Source of the DNA: Paramicrosporidium saccamoebae KSL3
Taxonomy: Eukaryota > Fungi > Cryptomycota
Length of the DNA stretch: 15,691 nucleotides
Assembly: GCA_002794465.1 (NCBI GenBank)
Contig: MTSL01000033.1
Location: 1-15,691 of the forward strand
Direction: 5' to 3'
Shown here in pieces: positions 1 through 15,621 of this stretch. Below the pieces are notes generated by a model, which worked only from the letters and a program-made list of their open reading frames with translations, was not told where the DNA came from and ran no database searches. The position numbers and the translations under genes are program-made. Numbering within the stretch: the first letter of the stretch is position 1; the number at the start of each line of letters is the position of its first letter.

Positions 1-131
1 GTGGCGGAAGATCGCCAGTTGGTTCTTCAGAGGTCGGTGGTGGCGGAAGATCACCAGTTGGTTCTTCAGAGTCCGCTGGTAGTTCTGTCCCCTTGTCAGG
101 GGCTGGTGGTGGCGGGAAATCACCAGTTGGT
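1..131. repeat. 39-bp coding tandem repeat (13-aa unit SEEPTGDLPPPPT) plus a diverged third copy
   Basis: gtggcggaagatc(g/a)ccagttggttcttcagag occurs at 1-32 and 40-71; a related copy gtggcgggaaatcaccagttggt lies at 109-131. Confidence 0.9.
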
Positions 132-316
132 AGCAACTCCTCCTCTGAGCCCTGCGATTCACTCTCAGATAATAGTCCTGTCCCCTTGCCAAGGGGCGGT
201 GGTGGCACAGTGATCGTTGATGGCTCCCCAGAGGGCTTACCTTCAGCCCCCATGGCCGTCTCAAAGAGACTCACAGAGATCCACAACACGCAGATTGCAA
301 TCGCTGTCAACTTCAT
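1..316 (-). CDS. Secreted proline/acidic tandem-repeat protein, 5' part only (runs off the window); not in the ORF track
   Basis: Manual translation from ATG at 316-314 (A at -3) is open to base 1: MKLTAIAICVLWISVSLFETAMGAEGKPSGEPSTITVPPPPLGKGTGLLSESESQGSEEELLPTGDFPPPPAPDKGTELPADSEEPTGDLPPPPTSEEPTGDLPP... It has a signal-peptide-like N-terminus, and the repeat period (39 bp) is a multiple of 3. Confidence 0.78.
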   Translation of the reverse strand, partial: MKLTAIAICVLWISVSLFETAMGAEGKPSGEPSTITVPPPPLGKGTGLLSESESQGSEEELLPTGDFPPPPAPDKGTELPADSEEPTGDLPPPPTSEEPTGDLPP

Positions 317-337
317 TATTGCGTAGCCATACATCGT

Positions 338-583: not shown

Positions 584-3376
584 CTACTCGCTCGCATCAA
601 TCTGCATAGAATCGCGGGAAATTTTCCCAACAATCTCAGTTATACGATCACCAAGCGCAACCGCAATGCCCTGGGTCTTGCTTCGCAATCTCAAATGACC
701 AACGACACCAGCCGGGGACCTCTCGAGACAAATATTGGCAAGTATTTCCTCCCCAAACGTAGAGCGAGCATACATGTTGGCGGCAAGATAGTCACCAGTG
801 GCGCTGATGCCGAATCCAGGAGTCAGACAAGACATGTGGGAACCATCCAGGATGGATGTAAATACTTGTTGGAGAGACAAAGAATTGATGGCTGGCACAT
901 TGATTTTGTTCTCCCATTCAAGTGTGGTCCAGGTTGAGCGAAACTCCAAATCTGAAACGGACATGGGACGGACATATTCACAAATGTCAATGGGAATGGA
1001 ATTCAGAATAATGCTCTGCACATCGGTGATTCCGTAGGAAATTGACCCAAACACCAGACCATTGTCGGTGGACCTGACCTTGATGCCAGCCTTGGCAACT
1101 GCAAAGCCCAGTGGGGAAAGATTAATAGGAGCCGGCTTTTCATTCACCTTTAAATCGCCGCTTGTGGACAAGTCAATTGTGACATTTTGCAAAGTTTCCT
1201 CCATCTGGTTGACCAGCAGAATGTCCAGGATAATGTCCGAGTGACTGATGGTGACATAGGTCTCGGCATAGATTTCGTCAGAGAATCCAGTGAGCTGCAC
1301 AACTTTGGACAGCACGGAAACAATTTTGGATTCAGCAGCGTCAGATTCCACCGCCAAGCCAAGATCCTTTTCATAATATCCTTCGGGAATGGCAATTTTG
1401 CTGGTCCTTTCAAGGGCGGAGAAGCGAAAGGCAAGCAAATCATCGACCTTGGCCACAGCGTGCAAAATGGGCGCATCCCTCTTCTTGTCGAGGTGTGCAT
1501 CAAAAGCACTGCGACAATCGGAAGAAAATGCCTGTTGCAGAGACGGAGTAGGCTTGGCTAACACCCGCACAAAGAGCAATAATCGATCATAAGAGTCCTT
1601 GTCAATTTGGGACTTTACCACCCGCGAGAGTCCAGCCCGAAGAACTGAGGTGATGATGAGCATTACGGGCGCCTTGTGAGCTGCGTCTTGGGACTGCAAT
1701 GCGAGCTTTGTCAATGTTGCGCCAAGGGCCACAGCCACCCCATACTGTCCAGCGAGAATGAATTCTCGCAGAATGGGCACATCTGAACATCTCCCACCAT
1801 TGGCCACGGTGGTTAGTGCCGTTTCGGTAGCATAAGTACCATCGGGATTCAGCTTCCGGGTAGCCAAATTTGTCGTCTTTGATTGGCTATTATCAGATTC
1901 ATCCACAAGACGGGCCTTTTCCTCCACCTCTACAATAGGGAGCTGACCAATGCATCGTGTTAGGGTTGCAAAAGCCTCGTCGAAATTGTTGGAGAATTCT
2001 CCAATAATCCACAGCAGTCCGGCGGCGGCGTTGGCATTGGTCGTAGAGTTTTCGAGAATGTCGAGAAATTGAGCCACCTTTGCGATGCGGAGAGGCGGAT
2101 TCCGGTCGAGAATGACTTTAGCGTAGCGGATGGCATCGTGCACAATCGTAGCGTCAGCGTCTTTGAGCAGTTCCACAAAGCAATCAATTGCCAAAGAGTT
2201 GACGGGAGGGAAGCGGAAGGCACAGACATCAATGGCAGCCAACAGTGTCTGCTTGTATTCGGAGGCGCGATCATAGTCTGACAGCCTTCCAAGTTCCTTG
2301 ACCAGAAAAGACACTAAATCGGAAGCATGGCGAGCTGTGACTCCGGACATGAGAATTTCCAACGCCCTTTGCTTGACCGCCAAGTCAGAGGCGCCCAGAA
2401 CACGAAGAACGTCGAGAATCATTTCATTGACGACGCTCCCTTGGCTCTGCTGGAGTATTTTGAATCGGTCCAACACCATCAATTTGGCATTGTTGTCAGT
2501 CTCCTTGACGGCAAGTTCAATGTAACAATTGGCCACGGCGCGAATAGCCACGGGAGAGTTGGAGAGTTGCATTAGGGCTGTGGCTGCCTCAAATTGGACC
2601 ACTGTGGAATTTGATTCAAGCAAATTGACAATGCTCTTGACGTTTCTTGCAACGTTTTCCTGGAAACGGGCTGAATCGGCACGGATGAATTCAATGATGG
2701 CGAGTTGCAGGAGGGGATCCAGAGTGCAGATTTGGTCATTGAGCGTGTCAAAGAATTGCGCAGCCCGGGCCGGATCAGTGTGGCTCAGCATGATAAAGGC
2801 GTTTCGTTGACAGGCAGCATCAGTTTCGGTAGACATTAATGCCTGCACGACTTCGGGAGCGTCGGGGATAAGGAAATCGTTGGTTTGGTAAATGCTCAGA
2901 ATGGCAAAGATGGCATTACGACGCACATAGGCGTGACGGTGCTCCAGACACGCACGGACGGAGGGGAGGAGAGGCTCAAGAATTTCTGCTTCTCGGATGC
3001 GGGTGAGGAAACGCAGAGTCACACCGCGGACATATTCGTTGGGATGTTGCAGGTCGTTTCGGAGGGCATTGCAGAGGAGAATCATTTCGCTCAACAGTCT
3101 TCCCTCATTGTCCAGCTTGGGCACCAGTTCTACAAAGAGCAGGACCAGCTTTTTGAGCAGCTTGTTTTTCTGGTTGGGCAAGACAAAGCGGATAATGGTC
3201 ATGAGGAGGGCGGGTCCCATTCCCGCATGACCTGAGGAGAGGAGGGAGACGGCACTCTTCATGGCTGAAATGCGCGCCGTTTCATTGCCAGTTTCCAAAA
3301 TTCGACGAAGCTCGCTCACCTCGACATTAATGTTATTGCCTCCCACAATAATTGAGCATTCGGCCGCGACGGTCAT
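584..3376 (-). CDS. SEC26: Coatomer (COPI) subunit beta, ~930 aa
   Basis: Beta-COP signature stretches LLMTIIRFVLP, EMILLCNALRNDLQHPNEYVRGVTLRFL, LEPLLPSVRACLEHRHAYVRRNA, DGTYATETAL, QLTGFSDEIYAE, EFRSTWTTLEWENKINV and GHLRLRSKTQGIAVALGDRI. The first true ATG is at 3376 (the ORF-track start at 3406 is TTG); stop TAG at 586-584; no intron is needed. Confidence 0.97.
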   Translation of the reverse strand: MTVAAECSIIVGGNNINVEVSELRRILETGNETARISAMKSAVSLLSSGHAGMGPALLMTIIRFVLPNQKNKLLKKLVLLFVELVPKLDNEGRLLSEMILLCNALRNDLQHPNEYVRGVTLRFLTRIREAEILEPLLPSVRACLEHRHAYVRRNAIFAILSIYQTNDFLIPDAPEVVQALMSTETDAACQRNAFIMLSHTDPARAAQFFDTLNDQICTLDPLLQLAIIEFIRADSARFQENVARNVKSIVNLLESNSTVVQFEAATALMQLSNSPVAIRAVANCYIELAVKETDNNAKLMVLDRFKILQQSQGSVVNEMILDVLRVLGASDLAVKQRALEILMSGVTARHASDLVSFLVKELGRLSDYDRASEYKQTLLAAIDVCAFRFPPVNSLAIDCFVELLKDADATIVHDAIRYAKVILDRNPPLRIAKVAQFLDILENSTTNANAAAGLLWIIGEFSNNFDEAFATLTRCIGQLPIVEVEEKARLVDESDNSQSKTTNLATRKLNPDGTYATETALTTVANGGRCSDVPILREFILAGQYGVAVALGATLTKLALQSQDAAHKAPVMLIITSVLRAGLSRVVKSQIDKDSYDRLLLFVRVLAKPTPSLQQAFSSDCRSAFDAHLDKKRDAPILHAVAKVDDLLAFRFSALERTSKIAIPEGYYEKDLGLAVESDAAESKIVSVLSKVVQLTGFSDEIYAETYVTISHSDIILDILLVNQMEETLQNVTIDLSTSGDLKVNEKPAPINLSPLGFAVAKAGIKVRSTDNGLVFGSISYGITDVQSIILNSIPIDICEYVRPMSVSDLEFRSTWTTLEWENKINVPAINSLSLQQVFTSILDGSHMSCLTPGFGISATGDYLAANMYARSTFGEEILANICLERSPAGVVGHLRLRSKTQGIAVALGDRITEIVGKISRDSMQIDASE

Positions 3377-3453
3377 GTTCGCGGTAAAGTAGTTTTGTTT
3401 AACCAAAGTAGCCGTTTTATGAGGTGTAATTACGAGTGCGACCGGTCAGTAAC

Positions 3454-3525
3454 GGCCGCTTGGTTTAGTGGTATAATTCTCGCTTCGGGTGCGAGAGGTC
3501 CCGAGTTCGATTCTCGGAGCGGCCC
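3454..3525 (+). tRNA. tRNA-Pro, anticodon CGG, 72 nt, intronless
   Basis: Acceptor stem GGCCGCT/AGCGGCC; D arm TGGTTTAGTGGTATAAT; anticodon arm CTCGC-TTCGGGT-GCGAG (CGG at 3486-3488); T arm CCGAG-TTCGATT-CTCGG. The sequence matches the typical eukaryotic tRNA-Pro pattern. Confidence 0.97.
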
Positions 3526-3528
3526 CTG

Positions 3529-3533
3529 TTTTT
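3529..3533 (+). terminator. RNA polymerase III terminator (T5) of the tRNA-Pro gene
   Basis: TTTTT starts 4 nt after the tRNA 3' end. Confidence 0.8.
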
Positions 3534-3561
3534 GACAATTTCCAATAAAAAAGAGATAAAT

Positions 3562-3569
3562 TTTGGCGG
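3562..3569 (+). promoter_or_regulatory. Candidate E2F site upstream of MCM2
   Basis: TTTGGCGG fits the E2F consensus TTTSSCGS and lies ~30 bp upstream of the proposed MCM2 ATG; a CCAAT occurs at 3542-3546. Confidence 0.5.
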
Positions 3570-3598
3570 CAATCCTTAAACCCTGACGAGTGAGTGAA

Positions 3599-6289
3599 AT
3601 GGTAAACGAGGTGGTGCTGGGTGTTTATTATGGAGTAGAGTGGTCGCAAGCGTGGAAATGCGATTGATAGCGACTCGGATGCTCCCCCAGAGCCCTCCCA
3701 GGATTTGTTCCCCCGTGGCAGTGGGGACTTGTATGAGAGTGACGAGGTGGAGGAGGAAGACTTGACAGACCCACGGGGAGGGGAACTGTATGCGAGTGGA
3801 GACCAACCGAGCGACTTTAACGAAGACAGTCTCCCCCCGCCCCTCTCCGATGAGGAGGAGATGGCGACGACTGCTGAAATGCCGTATTTTCCAGATATAA
3901 TTCATGCTGTAGGGCCACGAATGAATTGCCCACTTCCACTCCCAATCCGATCATTTACAATTATGTAGTGCCGCCGCTTGCAACTGCCTCTGAAATCTCT
4001 TATCCGGATTACTGCGACTGGGAGGGACTGGACAGCGCTTTGGGAATGCACCGTACTGCGCCCCCCGTCATGACGGATCTGCGATTGGAGGATGCGACAC
4101 TGACAGAGTTGGAGACGGCGGGTTATACACTGACAGAGATTGTCAGCGAGGCAAAATTCCGCCGACGCATTGCCCGCGATTATCAGCGCTTCCTGACGAC
4201 CTTTACCGACGAAGTGGGCCAATCAGTGTACAACTCGCGTATCCGAGCCATGTGCGCAGCCAACTCTGAGAGTTTGGAGGTGAGTTATTTGCATTTGGTG
4301 GAGACGAATGCCTTTTTGGCCAAACTGCTGGCCAATGTTCCACTTGCCACCTTGGCCATTTTCGACGAAGCCACGATGCGAATTGTATTGCGACTCTTTG
4401 AGGAATATGACAAGATTAAGAGCGAAATTCATGTACGGATCACTGACTTTCCCACCCTCGACAGTCTGCGTGATCTGCGCTATAATCATTTGGGCACTAT
4501 GATAAAGGTGTCGGGGGTAGTCACTCGCCGCAGCGGCGTCTTTCCACAACTGAAGCTCGTCAAATATGACTGTGGAAAGTGCGGAGCCATTCTGGGACCA
4601 TATGTACAAGACTTGAATCAGGAGATTCGCATCAGCGCCTGTTCTGAATGTGAAGCACGTGGGCCGTTTACTATTAATGCGGCACAGACAGTCTATCGGA
4701 ACTATCAGAAATTGACCCTGCAGGAGAGTCCTGGATCAGTGCCAGCTGGCCGTCTGCCTCGTCACAAAGAAGTCATTTTGCTGTGGGATCTTATTGACTG
4801 TGCCCGACCCGGAGAACTAGTTGAGGTTACGGGAATCTACCGAAACAACTTTTCCTACATGCTCAACAGCAAGAATGGCTTTCCCGTCTTTTCCACTGTC
4901 ATTGAGGCCAATTGGATTGGGAAGCGCGCGGATCAGTTTGCCGAGTTCCGCTTGACTGAAGAGGATCAGCGCGAGATTCGCCGATTGGCCGAGGATCCTC
5001 ACATTGGCCTTCGTATCATCCGCAGCATCGCTCCTTCCATTTATGGTCATCAGGACATTAAGACGGCCATTGCTCTGGCTCTGTTTGGCGGACAAGCCAA
5101 GAATGCCCAGGGAAAACATGTGATTCGTGGAGATATTAATGTGCTCCTCCTGGGTGATCCAGGAACGGCAAAGAGTCAGTTCCTAAAGTATGTAGAAAAG
5201 ACGGCACATCGGGCAGTGTACACTACTGGCCAAGGCGCCTCGGCGGTGGGTCTGACGGCCAGCGTGCGCAAGGATCCCCTTACCCGGGAATGGACACTGG
5301 AAGGAGGTGCACTGGTATTGGCAGATAAGGGAGTATGTCTTATTGACGAGTTTGACAAGATGAACGACTCGGATCGCACCAGCATCCACGAGGCCATGGA
5401 GCAGCAAAGCATTTCCATCAGCAAAGCAGGCATTGTCACCTCTCTTCAGGCGCGTTGTTCCATCATTGCGGCAGCCAATCCCACTCGCGGAAGATATAAC
5501 TCGGCCCTTCCCTTTTCGCAAAATGTCCATCTGACAGAGCCCATTTTGTCTCGTTTTGACATTCTGTGCGTAGTGAGAGACACGGTGGATGCAACTATTG
5601 ACGAGAGATTGGCGCGTTTTGTGGTGGGCAGTCACATTCGCAGCCATCCAGAAGCGGACACTATACTGGCAGACACTCTCCAGGCCGACACACTGATCCA
5701 GACGGTGGAGCCTTTGCCGCAGCCGCTGCTTAAAAAGTATTTGCTGTATGCCAAGTCGCGTATCCGTCCTGAGCTCAGTCAGATGGATGTGGACAAGATT
5801 GCGCGGTTGTATGCAGATCTCCGCCGTGAATCGCTGGCCACGGGTTCGATCCCCATCACTGTGCGTCACATTGAGTCTTTGGTGCGTATGTCTGAGGCAC
5901 ATGCGCGTATGCATCTGCGGGATCATGTGCGCAGCGACGACATTGATCTTGCCATCCGGGTAATGCTGTCCAGCTTCATTCAGTCCCAGAAATACTCTGT
6001 CATGACCCATCTGCGTCGTGCCTTTGGCAAATACATTACCCATCGCAAGGAACACGGCGAGCTGTTACTGTTTGCCCTCCAGGAACTTGTCAATGAGCGT
6101 ATTAAGTTGCTGTCTGTCCGCTACTCTGATGAGCTTCCTGGCGAAATTGAAATTGACATGCCCGATTTTGAAGCGCGGGCCAAAGAGCTAAATGTGTATG
6201 ATATCAAGCCTTTCCTCTCCAGTCGCTTCTTTACTGCCTCGGGATGTCGTGTTGATCTTGACCGTCGTGTCATTGTCAAGTCTCTTTAA
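3599..6289 (+). CDS. MCM2: DNA replication licensing factor MCM2, proposed join(3599..3601,3639..3883,3913..6289), 874 aa
   Basis: Zn finger CGKC...CSEC; QESPGSVPAGRLPRHKEVILL; Walker A GDPGTAKS; Walker B CLIDEFDKM; Arg finger SRFD; RRESLATGSIPITVRHIES. The acidic N-terminus is in a different frame (track ORF 3705..3968) and joins through two short GT..TAG introns. The core (~4100-6289) is certain; the 5' exon model is inferred. Confidence 0.95.
3602..3638 (+). other. Proposed 37-nt intron directly after the MCM2 start codon
   Basis: ATG|GTAAAC...GGAGTAG|AGT GGT CGC AAG CGT gives MSGRKRG...; removing it bypasses the TAG at 3636-3638 that closes the N-terminal frame. Confidence 0.6.
3884..3912 (+). 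other. Proposed 29-nt phase-2 intron of MCM2
   Basis: GTATTT...CTGTAG; a length of 2 mod 3 is exactly what joins the N-terminal frame to the main frame. A longer alternative acceptor at 4035 is also in frame. Confidence 0.55.
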
Positions 6290-6620: not shown

Positions 6621-8838
<2,218 letters not shown>

Positions 8839-8982
8839 TAATTTATCCATAAAACTTTGATCCGGTTTATATCGTGTAATGTGTAGTGTGTAGTGGGTGG
8901 AGTATAAGGCACAATAGAACGGGTATCCCTGGACCATCTGCATAATTAATTAGGGTGGTTAGCCAGGGTATCGCTGTACGAG

Positions 8983-9972
8983 ATGAAGTCGACACTATTG
9001 TTCTTCCTGTCGTTCTGTATGACTTATGCCGCCTCTACCTCGAAAAAAATCAAAAAGCTTCCTGGTAAAGAAGAATCAGAGAAGGCCTCTAGTGGGTTTG
9101 ATTCGATGGAGCTTGAGCTTAGCCTAGCCCGCCTGGGAAAGTTGTACGCGTCTGGGGCCTTTTGTGGGAGCTCAAGCAACTCTGTCTCCTCTCACTCTCA
9201 ATCCCCCTCTCGCTCTCGCTCTCGTTCCCCTTCTCCCTCTTACGACGTCTCATCCCTTCTCCTCTCTTCCTCCTCCTCCTCAGTTGATGCTCGTTCACCG
9301 CCCAGAAAGCGTCGTAAGACGGTCGATGAAAGAGATGCCGGTGGGTTTATCGTATACACGGACAATTCTAGCTTTGCTCCTTTGAGTTCCCAGGCGCTCC
9401 CACCGCTCCCAAAAGTAGTTGTGCCCAGCAAGGAAATTACTAACAAGTATACGCCGTTTTTGAAGGAGCTTATTGCCGGAGGAGACGACAGTCTGAAGGT
9501 TGTCTATGCGAGCGTTTCTGGCCTTAAGCATATTCAAAGCGAACTGAATGGAATTCCAGAATACATCAAGGCCGACCTTATTCTCAGTTCAATCCCCTTT
9601 AAAGGCCTCCCTCTTAAGGATTTGAAAAAGCTGGAGGCTGCTTTGAATGCTATTTCGGGAAAACGCATCTCTAAAAGGCTCCAAAAGATGCTAACTTCCG
9701 CAATGGTAGTCCTGAAAATTTTCAAAAAGAATTTCCCAAGGGGCCTCACTATTGCCGAGACAGAAGACTTGTTTACTCTATTAAAGTATACGTTGCTTAC
9801 CGCCTTTCCGTTCTACAGGCGCACCGATGCCATGGAATACCGAGATGGCGACTACCAAGTGATGACGGATTGGCCCGTCAAGTATACTGGGCGGGATCAT
9901 GAAATTCGGGCCTTTAGAGAATCACTCCGAGAAATGTATGGCGAGCAAGTGGGGAAAAACCAATCCAAATAA
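8983..9972 (+). CDS. Hypothetical secreted protein, 329 aa, with Ser-rich/RS tract and classical NLS
   Basis: Long ATG ORF in otherwise free sequence; N-terminus MKSTLLFFLSFCMTYAAS is signal-peptide-like; SPSRSRSRSPSPS at aa 74-86; PPRKRRKTV at aa 106-114. No family was recognised. Confidence 0.8.
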   Translation: MKSTLLFFLSFCMTYAASTSKKIKKLPGKEESEKASSGFDSMELELSLARLGKLYASGAFCGSSSNSVSSHSQSPSRSRSRSPSPSYDVSSLLLSSSSSSVDARSPPRKRRKTVDERDAGGFIVYTDNSSFAPLSSQALPPLPKVVVPSKEITNKYTPFLKELIAGGDDSLKVVYASVSGLKHIQSELNGIPEYIKADLILSSIPFKGLPLKDLKKLEAALNAISGKRISKRLQKMLTSAMVVLKIFKKNFPRGLTIAETEDLFTLLKYTLLTAFPFYRRTDAMEYRDGDYQVMTDWPVKYTGRDHEIRAFRESLREMYGEQVGKNQSK

Positions 9973-10384: not shown

Positions 10385-10619
10385 TATACCCCGCTTTACA
10401 TGTGCTCTTATCAATGCCACTAGAGCCTGGCCTATCCGGCGACAGTGATCCAAGATTTGTCAATCAGTGCATCTCATCGATGGCGATGACTGCAGTCACT
10501 CTATAAATAGCCCGGAAATTTGCTAGAGTTGACCAACACGAGCACCCAGCGTCTTTAGTGGTGGCGTCCCATTATCCACGGGAATTGAAGCCGCTGTCCA
10601 TCATGGTGATGATTTATCG
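10385..10619 (+). pseudogene. Truncated relic of family X (paralogue of 12785..13453)
   Basis: 10551-10619 reads VFSGGVPLSTGIEAAVHHGDDLS vs AFDNSIPLSKRIEAMLPFDDELA in the intact copy. The start appears to be lost (ATA where copy B has ATG), with frameshifts and the 3' part missing. Confidence 0.6.
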
Positions 10620-10900
10620 TTACGTTGCCGTTGGGTGGGTCATGTTCGCCATGTCATGGTGGGCTAAGCTGGATCATTGATAGAAGGTAGTGCACTCACA
10701 ATTTTCCCCTCGGACCACGGTCGTTAAACCAGCCAGGTGAATCGCTGGACAAATCGGCACAGGAGCCAGTCTTTAATCATTGTGTATTTGAGTGAGCGGT
10801 TAGGGACGAATTCGACTTTGGGCGTGCTTGCAAGATGTGACAATGCAGCTTCCGCTGTAGTTGGCAAAACCTCAGTGTCTCCCTTGGTCTCTTAGATATA

Positions 10901-11005
10901 CTACTCGCATCGATCACGGTGTATCGGCATGAAGCCACATGTAGCAAGTTGATAAAGGCTTATGCATGGGTCTTTGTGTCGATACGCCGCGATCGATGCG
11001 AGTAG
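10901..11005 (+). ncRNA. Candidate long-stem hairpin RNA, copy A
   Basis: 10901-10943 pairs ungapped with 10963-11005: 43 positions, 35 Watson-Crick, 5 G-U, 3 mismatches, 19-nt loop. Transcription is not shown. Confidence 0.5.
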
Positions 11006-11010
11006 CACGG

Positions 11011-11629
11011 CTATATCAGTATAGTGACTATCAGCTCACTATTCAAATCTTTGGCCAATGCACCTACAATGATGGCGGCAATACAGTCCAGGAACACTTT
11101 AGCAAGCCTTTCGCGTCGGACAGGTATTATTTTGCATTCAGGGTGTAACCTGGGAAAGAGAGTGCTAGTACTCTGAAAGGTCTTCTTGATTAAAGACTGA
11201 TTGCTTGATCTAATCAAATGTGTACATGTAAACACGATCCACAAGGACGAGAAAGTCAACAACGCGGTTAGCGTCTTTGTAGTATCTCGGAAGTGCGGTG
11301 CGCCTAGGAAAAGCGATACCCAAATCCATGCCACATGAATCCTAAATTTTGGACCCATTACTTGGCGTATATGGATGGCGAAAACTTCAATAATTGCTAC
11401 GACCATCTTGCTAAAAACCGTGGACGGCCCAATGGATGGTACAAATGAACTCCCTACAATATCAGTCAATAACGGGAGATTTGCGTACCAATGACTTTAA
11501 GCAAGTGGAGCGAGATTAGTACGATATTTACGCTCGACATCAAGGCTGAGGCCCACTGTAACAGCGCTTTAGTAATGGGACATGGATTCCTACTAATTCA
11601 AAAGGTCGGCTGGCACGAAGCTAACGCAT
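11011..11629 (-). pseudogene. Decayed hydrophobic (membrane-like) gene Y, copy A
   Basis: Minus-strand frame GPKFRIHVAWIWVSLFLGAPHFRDTTK matches copy B GPKLRIYVAWIWLFLFTDAPHFRNTTK. There is a 1-nt deletion near 11480 and a stop right after the boundary ATG. Confidence 0.5.
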
Positions 11630-12784: not shown

Positions 12785-13453
12785 ATGGTGAAGGCAGGCC
12801 GAGCTCCCATAATACCCACTCTTCGTCGAGCCAAAGCCAAGGTTGAGTCTCGGTATCCCAATGCGTTTGATAATAGTATCCCACTATCAAAAAGAATTGA
12901 AGCCATGTTGCCCTTTGACGACGAGTTGGCAGAACTGTTTCAGCTTATCCACGTCTTTCTGGCTACCGGCTATGGTGACTGGCGCAAATTTCAGGAAAAG
13001 AACATTCCCCTATACAATATCCACGATGGGTTCGTCATGATATATGACGGGAAAATCGCAGAGTGCAAGGCGCTGATTAATAGGAAACTTCTCCCCCCTT
13101 CTAAGCCTGTTTCTTGGACAGGGCTCACGTTTTCAAAGATGAGAAGCATGAATAAGCTTATACCCGACCATCTTTTAACATCGGGGTCACTCGCCAGGGT
13201 GTTTTTTCAGGTTGCTAATTTGCAGCCAGAAGGTTGTCCCGAATTCTGCCAAACATACTATTGCCTGTCCGTTTATGAAAAGCTTACAAGAGATAGGATG
13301 GTTCCCTCTGAAAAGCTTGACCGAGGACTGCAACATGCTTGGAAATTATTTGCCACCCAGTCTTTGTATTTCACGCTTTACAACAAATTGGTGACCAAGA
13401 CTCCCGAGGAATTTGTAGGGTTTTTGGATATTGTCGTGGGACAAGCACCCTGA
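12785..13453 (+). CDS. Hypothetical protein, 222 aa, intact member of local family X
   Basis: ATG in good context (agcATGG). Protein-level conservation with the copy at 13940..14769 (IPDHLLTSGS/IPRHLLVTGS, YYCLSVYEK identical, TPEEFVGF/TPEEFVRF) supports a real coding history. No known family was recognised. Confidence 0.75.
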   Translation: MVKAGRAPIIPTLRRAKAKVESRYPNAFDNSIPLSKRIEAMLPFDDELAELFQLIHVFLATGYGDWRKFQEKNIPLYNIHDGFVMIYDGKIAECKALINRKLLPPSKPVSWTGLTFSKMRSMNKLIPDHLLTSGSLARVFFQVANLQPEGCPEFCQTYYCLSVYEKLTRDRMVPSEKLDRGLQHAWKLFATQSLYFTLYNKLVTKTPEEFVGFLDIVVGQAP

Positions 13454-13939
13454 GGCGCACTCGTAGGCAAGAGCTCTTGGCTATTTGGAGAGTCTCTTTT
13501 GTAGTGCTGCATATTGATCAGTATTTTTCCCCAGTCAGCTGATCCATCACACAACCGCCCACTTGCTAACCGAGAAAATGGCTATAGGCGATTAACAGAT
13601 CGGCATTGCAGGACTTGACAGAAGATTCCGTCGCAAATTCTCGCCCATCACCTGATACGAGCGTGTAGGCAGAACTTTGGTTTATTAAAGTGTCGTGTTA
13701 ATTGGAAGTTAAATGTATTAAAGGACGTAGCATCTTTATAAACATCTATTCTCAATGACAGATAGGTATCGTGGGATAGCTATCAGGCGCCGGAACACCG
13801 ATCACGAACGGGCAGCTCTATACCTCGCTTTATGTTATCGCCGACGCTACTAGGGTCTGGCCTATTCGGGACAAAGATCCAAGATCTACCAATCAGCACA
13901 TCTCATCGATGGGGGATAATCGCAGTCATCCTATCATCA

Positions 13940-14769
13940 ATGGCCTCAAAATTCGCTGGGGTTAGCTAGCACGAACCCCTCGACTAAGCCAAGACCCGAG
14001 TCGAAGCTCAAGTCTCGGATGCCTTTAACGGTAATGTTCCGTTACCCGCAAGGATTGATGCTATTGCGCGTTGTGGTAATGATATATTCCAACTGTTCCA
14101 GTACATCGAAATCTTTTCGGTCATCGGCCACGATAACTGGCAGGAATTCAGGACTGGCTATCTCCCGCAGAAACTCTCGATAAAGGATTCTTGCCGATGC
14201 TTGCTAACAGATTGGATGAACACAAGGCGTTTATAACCGAGAAGCTCCATCCCATCATTGTTGAACCACCTCACTTACCTCAATTAGCCTTTTTGGAAAT
14301 GAGAGCGATGAACGGACACATACCCCGTCATCTTTTGGTCACAGGATCACGTGCCAAGATATTCTGCCGTATCTCTAACTTGATGCCGGAGGATCATTCT
14401 GAGCTTTGCGAGTCCTACTATTGCCTATCTGTATATGAGAAATTTATAAGAGGCATGGTATCCACCGAGGAGCTTGAGCAAAGGTTAGAGCAGGTATGGA
14501 ACTCTTTAATATCCAAAAACCTGCACAGCGTATTTTATAGCGAACTGCTATGTGGAACTCCCGAGGAGTTTGTTAGGTTTGCAGATGGCCTCATAACCCA
14601 AGTACCGGGACACGTTGTATGTGACGACTCCCAAGATCCGTTCAGGCTTTTAACATACTTCTGCTCTTACCCGATCTCATTGTGCCGGTCTGTGTCTGCA
14701 AGACAGTTTGAGGAAGGGAAGGGCATAGGATTCGGCTGTTTGCGGGCGACTAATGAATGTTGGGGATGA
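13940..14769 (+). pseudogene. Disrupted family X paralogue
   Basis: ATG at 13940, then TAG and TAA (13985) within 16 codons. AKTRVEAQVSDAFNGNVPLPARIDAI aligns with AKAKVESRYPNAFDNSIPLSKRIEAM. A 1-nt frameshift near 14171-14181 leads into track ORF 14191..14769 (TTG start). Confidence 0.7.
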
Positions 14770-14858
14770 ATTCGACTTTAGTCGTGCTTGCAAGGTGCGA
14801 CAATGCAGCTTCCGCTGTAGTTGGCAAAGTCTCGGCGTTTCCTCATAATTTTTTAGAT

Positions 14859-14969
14859 GTGCTACTCGTATCGATCACGGCGTATCGGCACGAAGCCACA
14901 TATAATGCGTTAATGATATCTTATGTATGGGTCTTTGTGTCAATACGCCGCGATCGATGCGAGTAGCAC
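14859..14969 (+). ncRNA. Candidate long-stem hairpin RNA, copy B
   Basis: 14859-14904 pairs ungapped with 14924-14969: 46 positions, 38 Watson-Crick, 4 G-U, 4 mismatches, 19-nt loop. Transcription is not shown. Confidence 0.5.
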
Positions 14970-15621
14970 GGTTACCAGGATAATGTTTATCGGCTTACTA
15001 CTGAAATCTTTGGTAAATGCTACTGCAACAATGACAGCGATACAGTCCAAGAAACCTTAGCAAGCCCTGAGCAGGTATTATTTTGCATTCATGGTGTAAC
15101 TTGGGAAAGAGAGTGCCGATGTTTTAAAAAGTTTCCTTAAACCAAGATCAGTTACTTGATCTAATCAGGTGTGCGCATATAAGCACGATACACAAGGGCG
15201 ATAAATTAATAATGCAGTCGGGGCTTTTGTAGTATTTCGAAAGTGGGGAGCATCAGTAAAAAGAAATAACCAGATCCATGCTACGTAGATTCTCAGTTTT
15301 GGACCCGGTATATGGCAAACATGGATGGCAAGAACTATGAGAATCGCCACAGCCATTTTCTAGGAATCGTGGTCGGTACAACGAACGGCACAGATGAACC
15401 CACTACAATGCAGATTAATAGCAAAAAGTTTTGCGTACCAACAGCTTTAAGCAGATGTAGTAAGATCAATACAGTGTTCACGTTCGACATGAAGGAGGGC
15501 TGAGACTCACTGCGGCAATGCTTTAGTAATGGAGCATTAATTCCGAATTCAAAAAGTCGGCCGACACGGCAATGGTGCGTGATTTCTTGATTAAGAGTCG
15601 GCTGGCACGAAGTCAACGCAT
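14940..15621 (-). pseudogene. Decayed hydrophobic gene Y, copy B
   Basis: Track ORFs 15335..15616 and 15165..15356 are successive frameshifted pieces that align with copy A; internal stops occur near 15100-15150. Confidence 0.5.

Follow-up and report, generated by a model that had tools for sequence, protein, structure and literature searches.

We analyzed a 15,691-nucleotide stretch of DNA (the window; contig MTSL01000033.1) and focus here on a single-exon gene at positions 8983-9972 of its + strand, which encodes a 329-residue orphan protein of secretory type. The window is the entire contig, part of assembly GCA_002794465.1 of Paramicrosporidium saccamoebae, which parasitizes the amoeba Saccamoeba from within its nucleus; the accession series MTSL00000000 is the one named in the genome paper of this species (PMC5701793). 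An initial annotation of the window had correctly guessed at an intracellular or intranuclear parasite. Every motif quoted in that annotation is present in the translation of this open reading frame (ORF): a hydrophobic N-terminus, a Ser-rich tract with RS dipeptides, the basic island SPPRKRRKTV and then ~210 residues. Features conserved in an orthologue suggest that the protein probably enters the secretory pathway; the evidence for and against its exposure to the host appears evenly poised. Our tentative reading is that of a secreted, host-exposed protein whose basic island may act as a classical nuclear localization signal (NLS) functional in the host.

An exhaustive phmmer search with aa 101-329 against 1.84 billion representative sequences recovered a single true relative, a protein of 191 aa (P0002; 53% identity, E = 4e-57). 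Two further matches were internally repetitive proteins, each matching in six short stretches, and were rejected as chance similarity inflated by repetition. The gene for P0002 lies on a 3,086-bp metagenome contig of the Joint Genome Institute (JGI), here L002, where it immediately follows the 3' end of an ATP synthase beta gene. The locus is syntenic and comes from a close but distinct relative, because the neighbouring gene is the same and its ATP synthase beta shares 98% of its amino acids and 88.6% of its nucleotides with that of the window. P0002 itself is a truncated gene call; the full ORF (L002:925-1815) encodes 296 aa and aligns with the window protein over its full length at 47% identity. 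Shared gene order stops right after the stop codon of the gene, which places it at the edge of a variable region.

Other searches added nothing to this pair. Pfam (E up to 10; whole protein, both halves and the orthologue) and NCBIfam gave no match, a single-sequence search of PDB sequences found nothing significant, and a word-index protein search with the whole protein, a profile of the C-terminal domain or the N-terminal 125 residues returned only the protein itself and P0002. Two scans of metagenome DNA with different peptide patterns yielded no further locus, and the paralogue search suggested in the initial annotation, run with tblastn, found no paralogue within the window. That annotation had also held that clear homology to a housekeeping nuclear protein would count against it; none was found by Pfam, NCBIfam, PDB sequences or the word-index and exhaustive protein searches. 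By the sequences searched, the gene is known only from the Paramicrosporidium lineage, in two copies from two organisms, and its C-terminal domain is an orphan.

The deposited gene model (P0001, 317 aa) starts at the second methionine, Met13 (position 9019). On sequence grounds the first ATG is the better-supported start, because Met1 and a block upstream of it are conserved in the orthologue, where the window's Met13 is a Leu, and because position -3 is a purine (G) at the first ATG and a T at Met13. In the window, the reading frame is closed by a stop 12 codons upstream of this ATG. The conserved non-coding block at 8960-8982 (+), a promoter or 5' leader, was apparent in two comparisons with L002. 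In blastn, similarity returns at 8960, 23 nt upstream of the first ATG, with 76% identity over 62 nt into the start of the coding sequence. A MAFFT alignment placed two conserved motifs within ~65 nt upstream of the ATG, the intergenic sequence (window 8839-8982, L002 672-924) being otherwise unalignable. Splicing is unnecessary, because both orthologues are one uninterrupted ORF with matching ends; a different true start through splicing, which the initial annotation had named as fatal to its proposal, was thus not what we found.

The N-terminus (aa 1-19; 8983-9039, +) resembles a signal peptide. Nowhere else is the protein as hydrophobic, and no other part of it is a candidate for a membrane span; the N-terminus carries Lys2 in its n-region followed by a 9-residue core within an 18-residue uncharged stretch. 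The orthologue has a hydrophobic core of 16 residues and keeps the same n/h/c layout, and in both proteins several sites at aa 14-20 obey the (-3,-1) rule. Both hallmarks of a Sec-type signal are therefore in place, namely a charged n-region with an h-region of ~7-15 residues, and small uncharged residues at -3 and -1. The mature protein would be ~34 kDa with a pI of ~9.7. It has neither a C-terminal hydrophobic tail nor a retention motif; the only Cys is not conserved in the orthologue, and the two share no conserved N-glycosylation sequon. The lack of these features and of a second span hints weakly at a soluble protein made for a reducing compartment, rather than a wall or apoplast protein.

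A Ser-rich, basic linker (aa 20-104; 9040-9294, +) follows. It is poorly conserved, with only 0-4 of 10 residues per block identical to the orthologue, and half of its residues from aa 61 to 104 are Ser. Within it lies the RS stretch (aa 74-86; 9202-9240, +), which is encoded by a CT-rich microsatellite and aligns to a gap in the L002 orthologue. Tandem Repeats Finder (TRF) reported arrays at 9185-9240 with periods of 6, 12 and 24 that encode this stretch, and its longest alternating RS run is 7 residues in the window versus 2 in the orthologue.

The basic island SPPRKRRKTV (aa 105-114; 9295-9324, +) fits an NLS consensus and, equally well, an extended Kex2-type site. SPPRKR-x-K is identical in both orthologues, whereas the linker around it is nearly unalignable. 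The core consensus of a classical NLS is K(K/R)X(K/R) (PMC6989684), and monopartite matches to it are found at aa 21 and 109 in the window protein; the orthologue has three, at aa 21, 80 and 83. The first match in the window protein is part of a basic cluster (aa 21-25) that is present at aa 21 in both, and the two basic clusters stand at corresponding places in the two proteins. When the mature window protein was shuffled with its composition preserved, 2.2% of the sequences contained a run of five basic residues; for the orthologue, a run of four such as its own appeared in 14%. The NLS consensus was expected 0.5-0.7 times per shuffled sequence, with 0.7 for the window protein, as against the 2 (window) and 3 (orthologue) observed. 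The basic run in the window alone is thus only mildly unusual, and since proteins that combine a signal peptide with a basic patch are no rarity within a proteome, the coincidence alone proves little. The island stands above chance because its position is conserved inside a divergent linker.

The C-terminal domain (aa 121-329; 9343-9969, +) is 53% identical to P0002, is predicted to be mostly helical and has no known relatives. AlphaFold2 (AF2) run on the single sequence gave a model too poor for use (predicted local distance difference test, pLDDT, 42). With a two-sequence alignment that included P0002, aa 115-329 were modelled at a pLDDT of 58 and a predicted template modelling score (pTM) of 0.55, with a helical core at ~aa 145-274 (pLDDT 65-85) and low confidence at aa 275-312. 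Foldseek found no significant match to the two-sequence model, the best E-values being 0.37 in PDB, where the template modelling (TM) score of the best result was 0.25, and 0.14 in BFVD, with TM scores of at most 0.28 overall.

The best-conserved stretch of the domain (aa 269-315; 9787-9927, +), which includes a block identical to the orthologue at 8 of 10 positions (aa 271-280), has a weak, non-significant likeness to bromodomains. When the profile A2 was searched against PDB sequences, all matches were second bromodomains of BRD2/BRD3, one redundant family that we count as a single independent match, and the best E-value was 0.37 (not significant). The likeness is an ungapped alignment of ~47 residues, in which aa 269-315 correspond to a segment running from the last part of helix Z through the ZA loop into the beginning of helix A. 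In contrast to a bromodomain, only ~15 residues follow this stretch, leaving no room for helices B and C or the acetyl-lysine-binding Asn, and one signature Tyr is Asn in the orthologue. We therefore do not assign the protein to the bromodomains: Pfam had no match at E up to 10, none was among the top 50 Foldseek matches, and the exhaustive search gave no support. It is a long shot that the domain is a truncated or remodelled mimic of a chromatin reader, acting on host chromatin in a protein that its NLS would hold in the amoeba nucleoplasm. If this were true, the protein would become the first effector on record from an intranuclear rozellid or early microsporidian.

Selection on the gene was estimated from the window and L002 with Nei-Gojobori (NG86) dN/dS ratios. 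ATP synthase beta is strongly conserved (dN 0.014, dS 0.64, omega 0.02). For the gene at 8983-9972 as a whole we found dN 0.48, dS 1.17 and omega 0.41, with marked differences along its length: the linker (aa 20-104) reached dN 1.43, dS 2.11 and omega 0.68 and the C-terminal domain dN 0.36, dS 0.98 and omega 0.37, and the lowest omega of the gene, 0.19 (dN 0.33, dS 1.74), belongs to the block at aa 105-135 that holds the basic island and the start of the domain. The gene is thus real, under purifying selection and fast-evolving. Replacement sites have changed ~30 times faster in it than in the adjacent ATP synthase beta, and a dN this far above that of a neighbour, with omega below 1, is a pattern typical of host-exposed parasite proteins and by analogy supports such a role here. 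Four features have been kept in both orthologues: Met1 and Lys2 with the hydrophobic stretch, the basic cluster at aa 21, SPPRKR-x-K, and the C-terminal domain from ~aa 121.

These features can be combined into a mechanism. The N-terminal 16-19 residues would be a cleavable signal peptide, and the wall-less intranuclear growth stage would export the ~34-kDa, very basic, Cys-poor mature protein into the nucleoplasm of the host amoeba. A 34-kDa protein without an NLS would presumably leak out through the nuclear pores. PPRKR-x-K, exposed in a disordered linker, could act as an importin-alpha-type NLS that keeps such a small, pore-leaky protein in the host nucleus or returns it there; classical NLSs are in use in the Amoebozoa (PMC11269297). 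The conserved helical C-terminal domain would bear the activity of the protein. Reading the island as an NLS rather than a protease site is favoured by the conserved Ser-Pro before it, the conserved Lys two residues after PRKR and the second conserved cluster at aa 21, none of which Kex2 would need.

Several points weigh against a secreted protein with a working NLS. First, the 15 residues after the hydrophobic stretch carry a net charge of +3 in the window protein and +5 in the orthologue; such positive charge beside a cleaved signal peptide is unusual and could alter topology. The deposited start at Met13, moreover, deletes the hydrophobic core of the N-terminus. Second, the parasite has no strict need of an NLS on what it secretes, as it lives in the nucleus already, and an NLS consensus as short as this one is expected by chance at the rate given above. 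Third, the same conserved island equally meets the extended Kex2 motif, and a mature protein that begins after PRKR would retain no more than part of the cluster, with two basic residues left in the window protein and, in the orthologue, a weaker match to K(K/R)X(K/R). Finally, all statements on conservation rest on two sequences.

The third of these points leads to the best-surviving alternative, a prepro-protein. In this case the signal would be removed in the endoplasmic reticulum (ER), and a kexin-type convertase would cut off the Ser-rich pro-domain (aa 20-110) after PRKR in the Golgi. Only the C-terminal domain (~aa 111 on) would be released, and it could still reach the host nucleoplasm given the habitat of the parasite. 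In effectors of the K2PP class, a signal peptide is combined with a disordered pro-domain that falls within the first half of the protein and with a KR/RR motif or an extended one in which P4 is Pro or aliphatic, and ~30% of surveyed fungal effectors bear a site of this type (PMC8528282). The features of this class are all found here: behind the signal-like N-terminus and the disordered linker, PRKR occupies aa 107-110 in the window protein and aa 78-81 in the orthologue, in both with P4, P2 and P1 occupied by Pro, Lys and Arg, respectively; the site lies about one third of the way along the protein, ~10 residues ahead of the point from which the folded domain is conserved. The putative pro-region also evolves in a near-neutral manner (omega 0.68), and kexins are nearly universal in fungi, although their presence is doubtful or they are absent in the sister lineage, Microsporidia (PMC5371821). 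The released C-terminal domain would, however, lack conserved cysteines, and the conserved residues around the site and at aa 21 would not be required by Kex2. As readings of the island, NLS and Kex2 site are nearly equal; as an account of the whole protein, we consider the prepro-protein possible, if somewhat unlikely.

This ambiguity bears on the central argument of the initial annotation, that a signal peptide and an NLS in one protein only make sense if it is exported into another cell. The argument is not supported, because the island also fits a Kex2 pro-domain motif and is placed where a pro-domain would end. What holds up is the pairing of a signal-like N-terminus with an NLS-type motif, both conserved in the orthologue at a dS of ~1; the assignment of the island to an NLS does not hold to the same extent, since it is equally of Kex2 type.

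A second alternative is that the protein is not secreted at all. The N-terminus would then be a non-working signal or an anchor, the bulk of the protein would remain in the cytosol, and the protein would be a nuclear or membrane-associated factor of the parasite itself. The start of the deposited model at Met13 is consistent with this, and the NLS consensus would serve the parasite's own nucleus. By the charge-difference rule, positive charge after a hydrophobic segment favours cytosolic placement of that side, which here is the C-terminal one. Nonetheless, we find this improbable: Met1, the block upstream of it and the hydrophobic character of the N-terminus are conserved and Met13 is not; the purine at -3 marks the first ATG and not Met13; with only 9-16 residues, the hydrophobic core has a length more in keeping with cleavage of a signal than with anchoring; and no nuclear housekeeping homologue was found among the 1.84 billion representatives.

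A third alternative would retain secretion and see in the protein a structural component of the spore, of the polar filament or the wall, to which the signal peptide would target it and in which the basic clusters would bind acidic polymers rather than importin. Spores of P. saccamoebae have a polar filament, and hidden Markov models (HMMs) found no polar filament proteins in the proteome, for which the authors cite rapid evolution (PMC5701793); a signal-bearing, basic, lineage-specific and fast-evolving protein would suit such a role. There is also a precedent in EnP1, first recognised as a protein of the spore wall and only later shown to have a nuclear role (PMC11348272). However, the Pfam search that gave no match at E up to 10 included the microsporidian spore-protein families, so the protein matches none of these and could at most have an analogous role. 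The conserved domain is free of repeats, conserved Cys and any Pro-rich pattern, and is predicted to be compact and helical, not fibrous. A spore structural protein is thus quite improbable.

Finally, the initial annotation took the RS tract for an RS domain, phosphorylated by SRPK/CLK, that would direct the protein to host splicing speckles. Nothing speaks for this beyond the alternating S-R stretch at aa 74-86. The proposal is highly improbable, because the tract counts no more than ~3 consecutive RS dipeptides, is the product of a hexanucleotide microsatellite and is absent from the orthologue, and because Pfam detects no RNA recognition motif (RRM) or other splicing-factor domain in the protein.

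The remainder of the window holds ordinary eukaryotic housekeeping genes to the left of the gene, namely coatomer beta (584-3406, -), MCM2 (3419-6289, +; deposited model of 851 aa), mitochondrial ATP synthase delta/epsilon (6621-7013, -) and mitochondrial ATP synthase beta (7306-8838, +). The long ORF of MCM2 begins at 3926 and the deposited model reaches upstream to 3419, implying an intron or an upstream exon. At 2-322 (-), cut by the left contig end, lies the ORF that the initial annotation had called ActA-like. Its N-terminus resembles a signal peptide and leads into an acidic tract, rich in Ser and Glu, that contains four (V/F/L)PPPP motifs. The ORF has no Pfam match; the deposited annotation has a + strand gene at 3-326 there instead. 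The right third of the contig contains a diverged duplication, with 10385-11617 and 13819-15568 sharing 71-75% of nucleotides, as well as a short inverted repeat at 10901-11008. The duplicated segments carry paralogous ORFs at 12785-13453 and 14191-14769 (43% amino acid identity, no Pfam match), which the deposited annotation fuses into one 421-aa gene at 12785-14576. As possible relatives of the gene at 8983-9972, these two ORFs were rejected as unrelated (hhalign probability 0.6%).

Our findings have a practical consequence for the study of this parasite. Secretome predictions from the deposited proteome would miss the protein, and possibly others, because the deposited model starts at the second Met and so is without the signal peptide. 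The P. saccamoebae genome paper does not discuss secreted proteins (PMC5701793), and our literature search turned up no paper on the secretome of this species.

The protein can be compared with three kinds of known systems. Its likeness to SR/RS splicing factors is confined to a short alternating Ser-Arg stretch in a Ser-rich region. RS domains run to tens of residues, and SR/RS proteins usually pair an extended, conserved RS-rich domain with an RRM, whereas the Paramicrosporidium protein has no RRM, no Pfam domain of any kind and a microsatellite-encoded tract of 7 residues that is not conserved. The resemblance to K2PP effectors such as SnTox3 (PMC8528282) is closer and comprises the signal peptide, the disordered stretch in the first half, the dibasic site with a P4 residue that is aliphatic or Pro, and a folded, lineage-specific domain thereafter. 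These effectors are typically Cys-stabilised and apoplastic, in contrast to the C-terminal domain described here, which is without conserved Cys; moreover, the conserved island is longer than a Kex2 site needs, and a Kex2-type site within it is a candidate.

The third comparison is with effectors of Microsporidia that enter the host nucleus. EnP1 of Encephalitozoon hellem has a signal peptide and two NLSs, and its secretion, its dependence on the NLSs and its target, histone H2B, have been shown experimentally (PMC11348272). NbRBL28 of Nosema bombycis is likewise an effector with a signal peptide and an NLS-type motif that enters the host nucleus (PMC9224602), and further effectors of this build are reported from nematodes, mycorrhizal fungi and other fungal pathogens. 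The Paramicrosporidium protein shares with EnP1 and NbRBL28 a signal peptide at the N-terminus, in its own case a putative one, basic NLS-type motifs, a lineage-specific distribution and an origin in a fungus-related intracellular parasite, and its two consensus matches recall the two NLSs of EnP1. It has no sequence or domain similarity to either protein, and the setting is unlike that of EnP1, as Paramicrosporidium already lives in the nucleus and its host is an amoeba. The properties of EnP1 were established by experiment, whereas those of the protein described here are predicted from its sequence. The principle of an effector with a signal peptide and an NLS is thus already proven in Microsporidia, and to this the gene at 8983-9972 adds not a new principle but a concrete, conserved candidate for a host-exposed protein of Paramicrosporidium, a parasite that dwells in the nucleus of its host.

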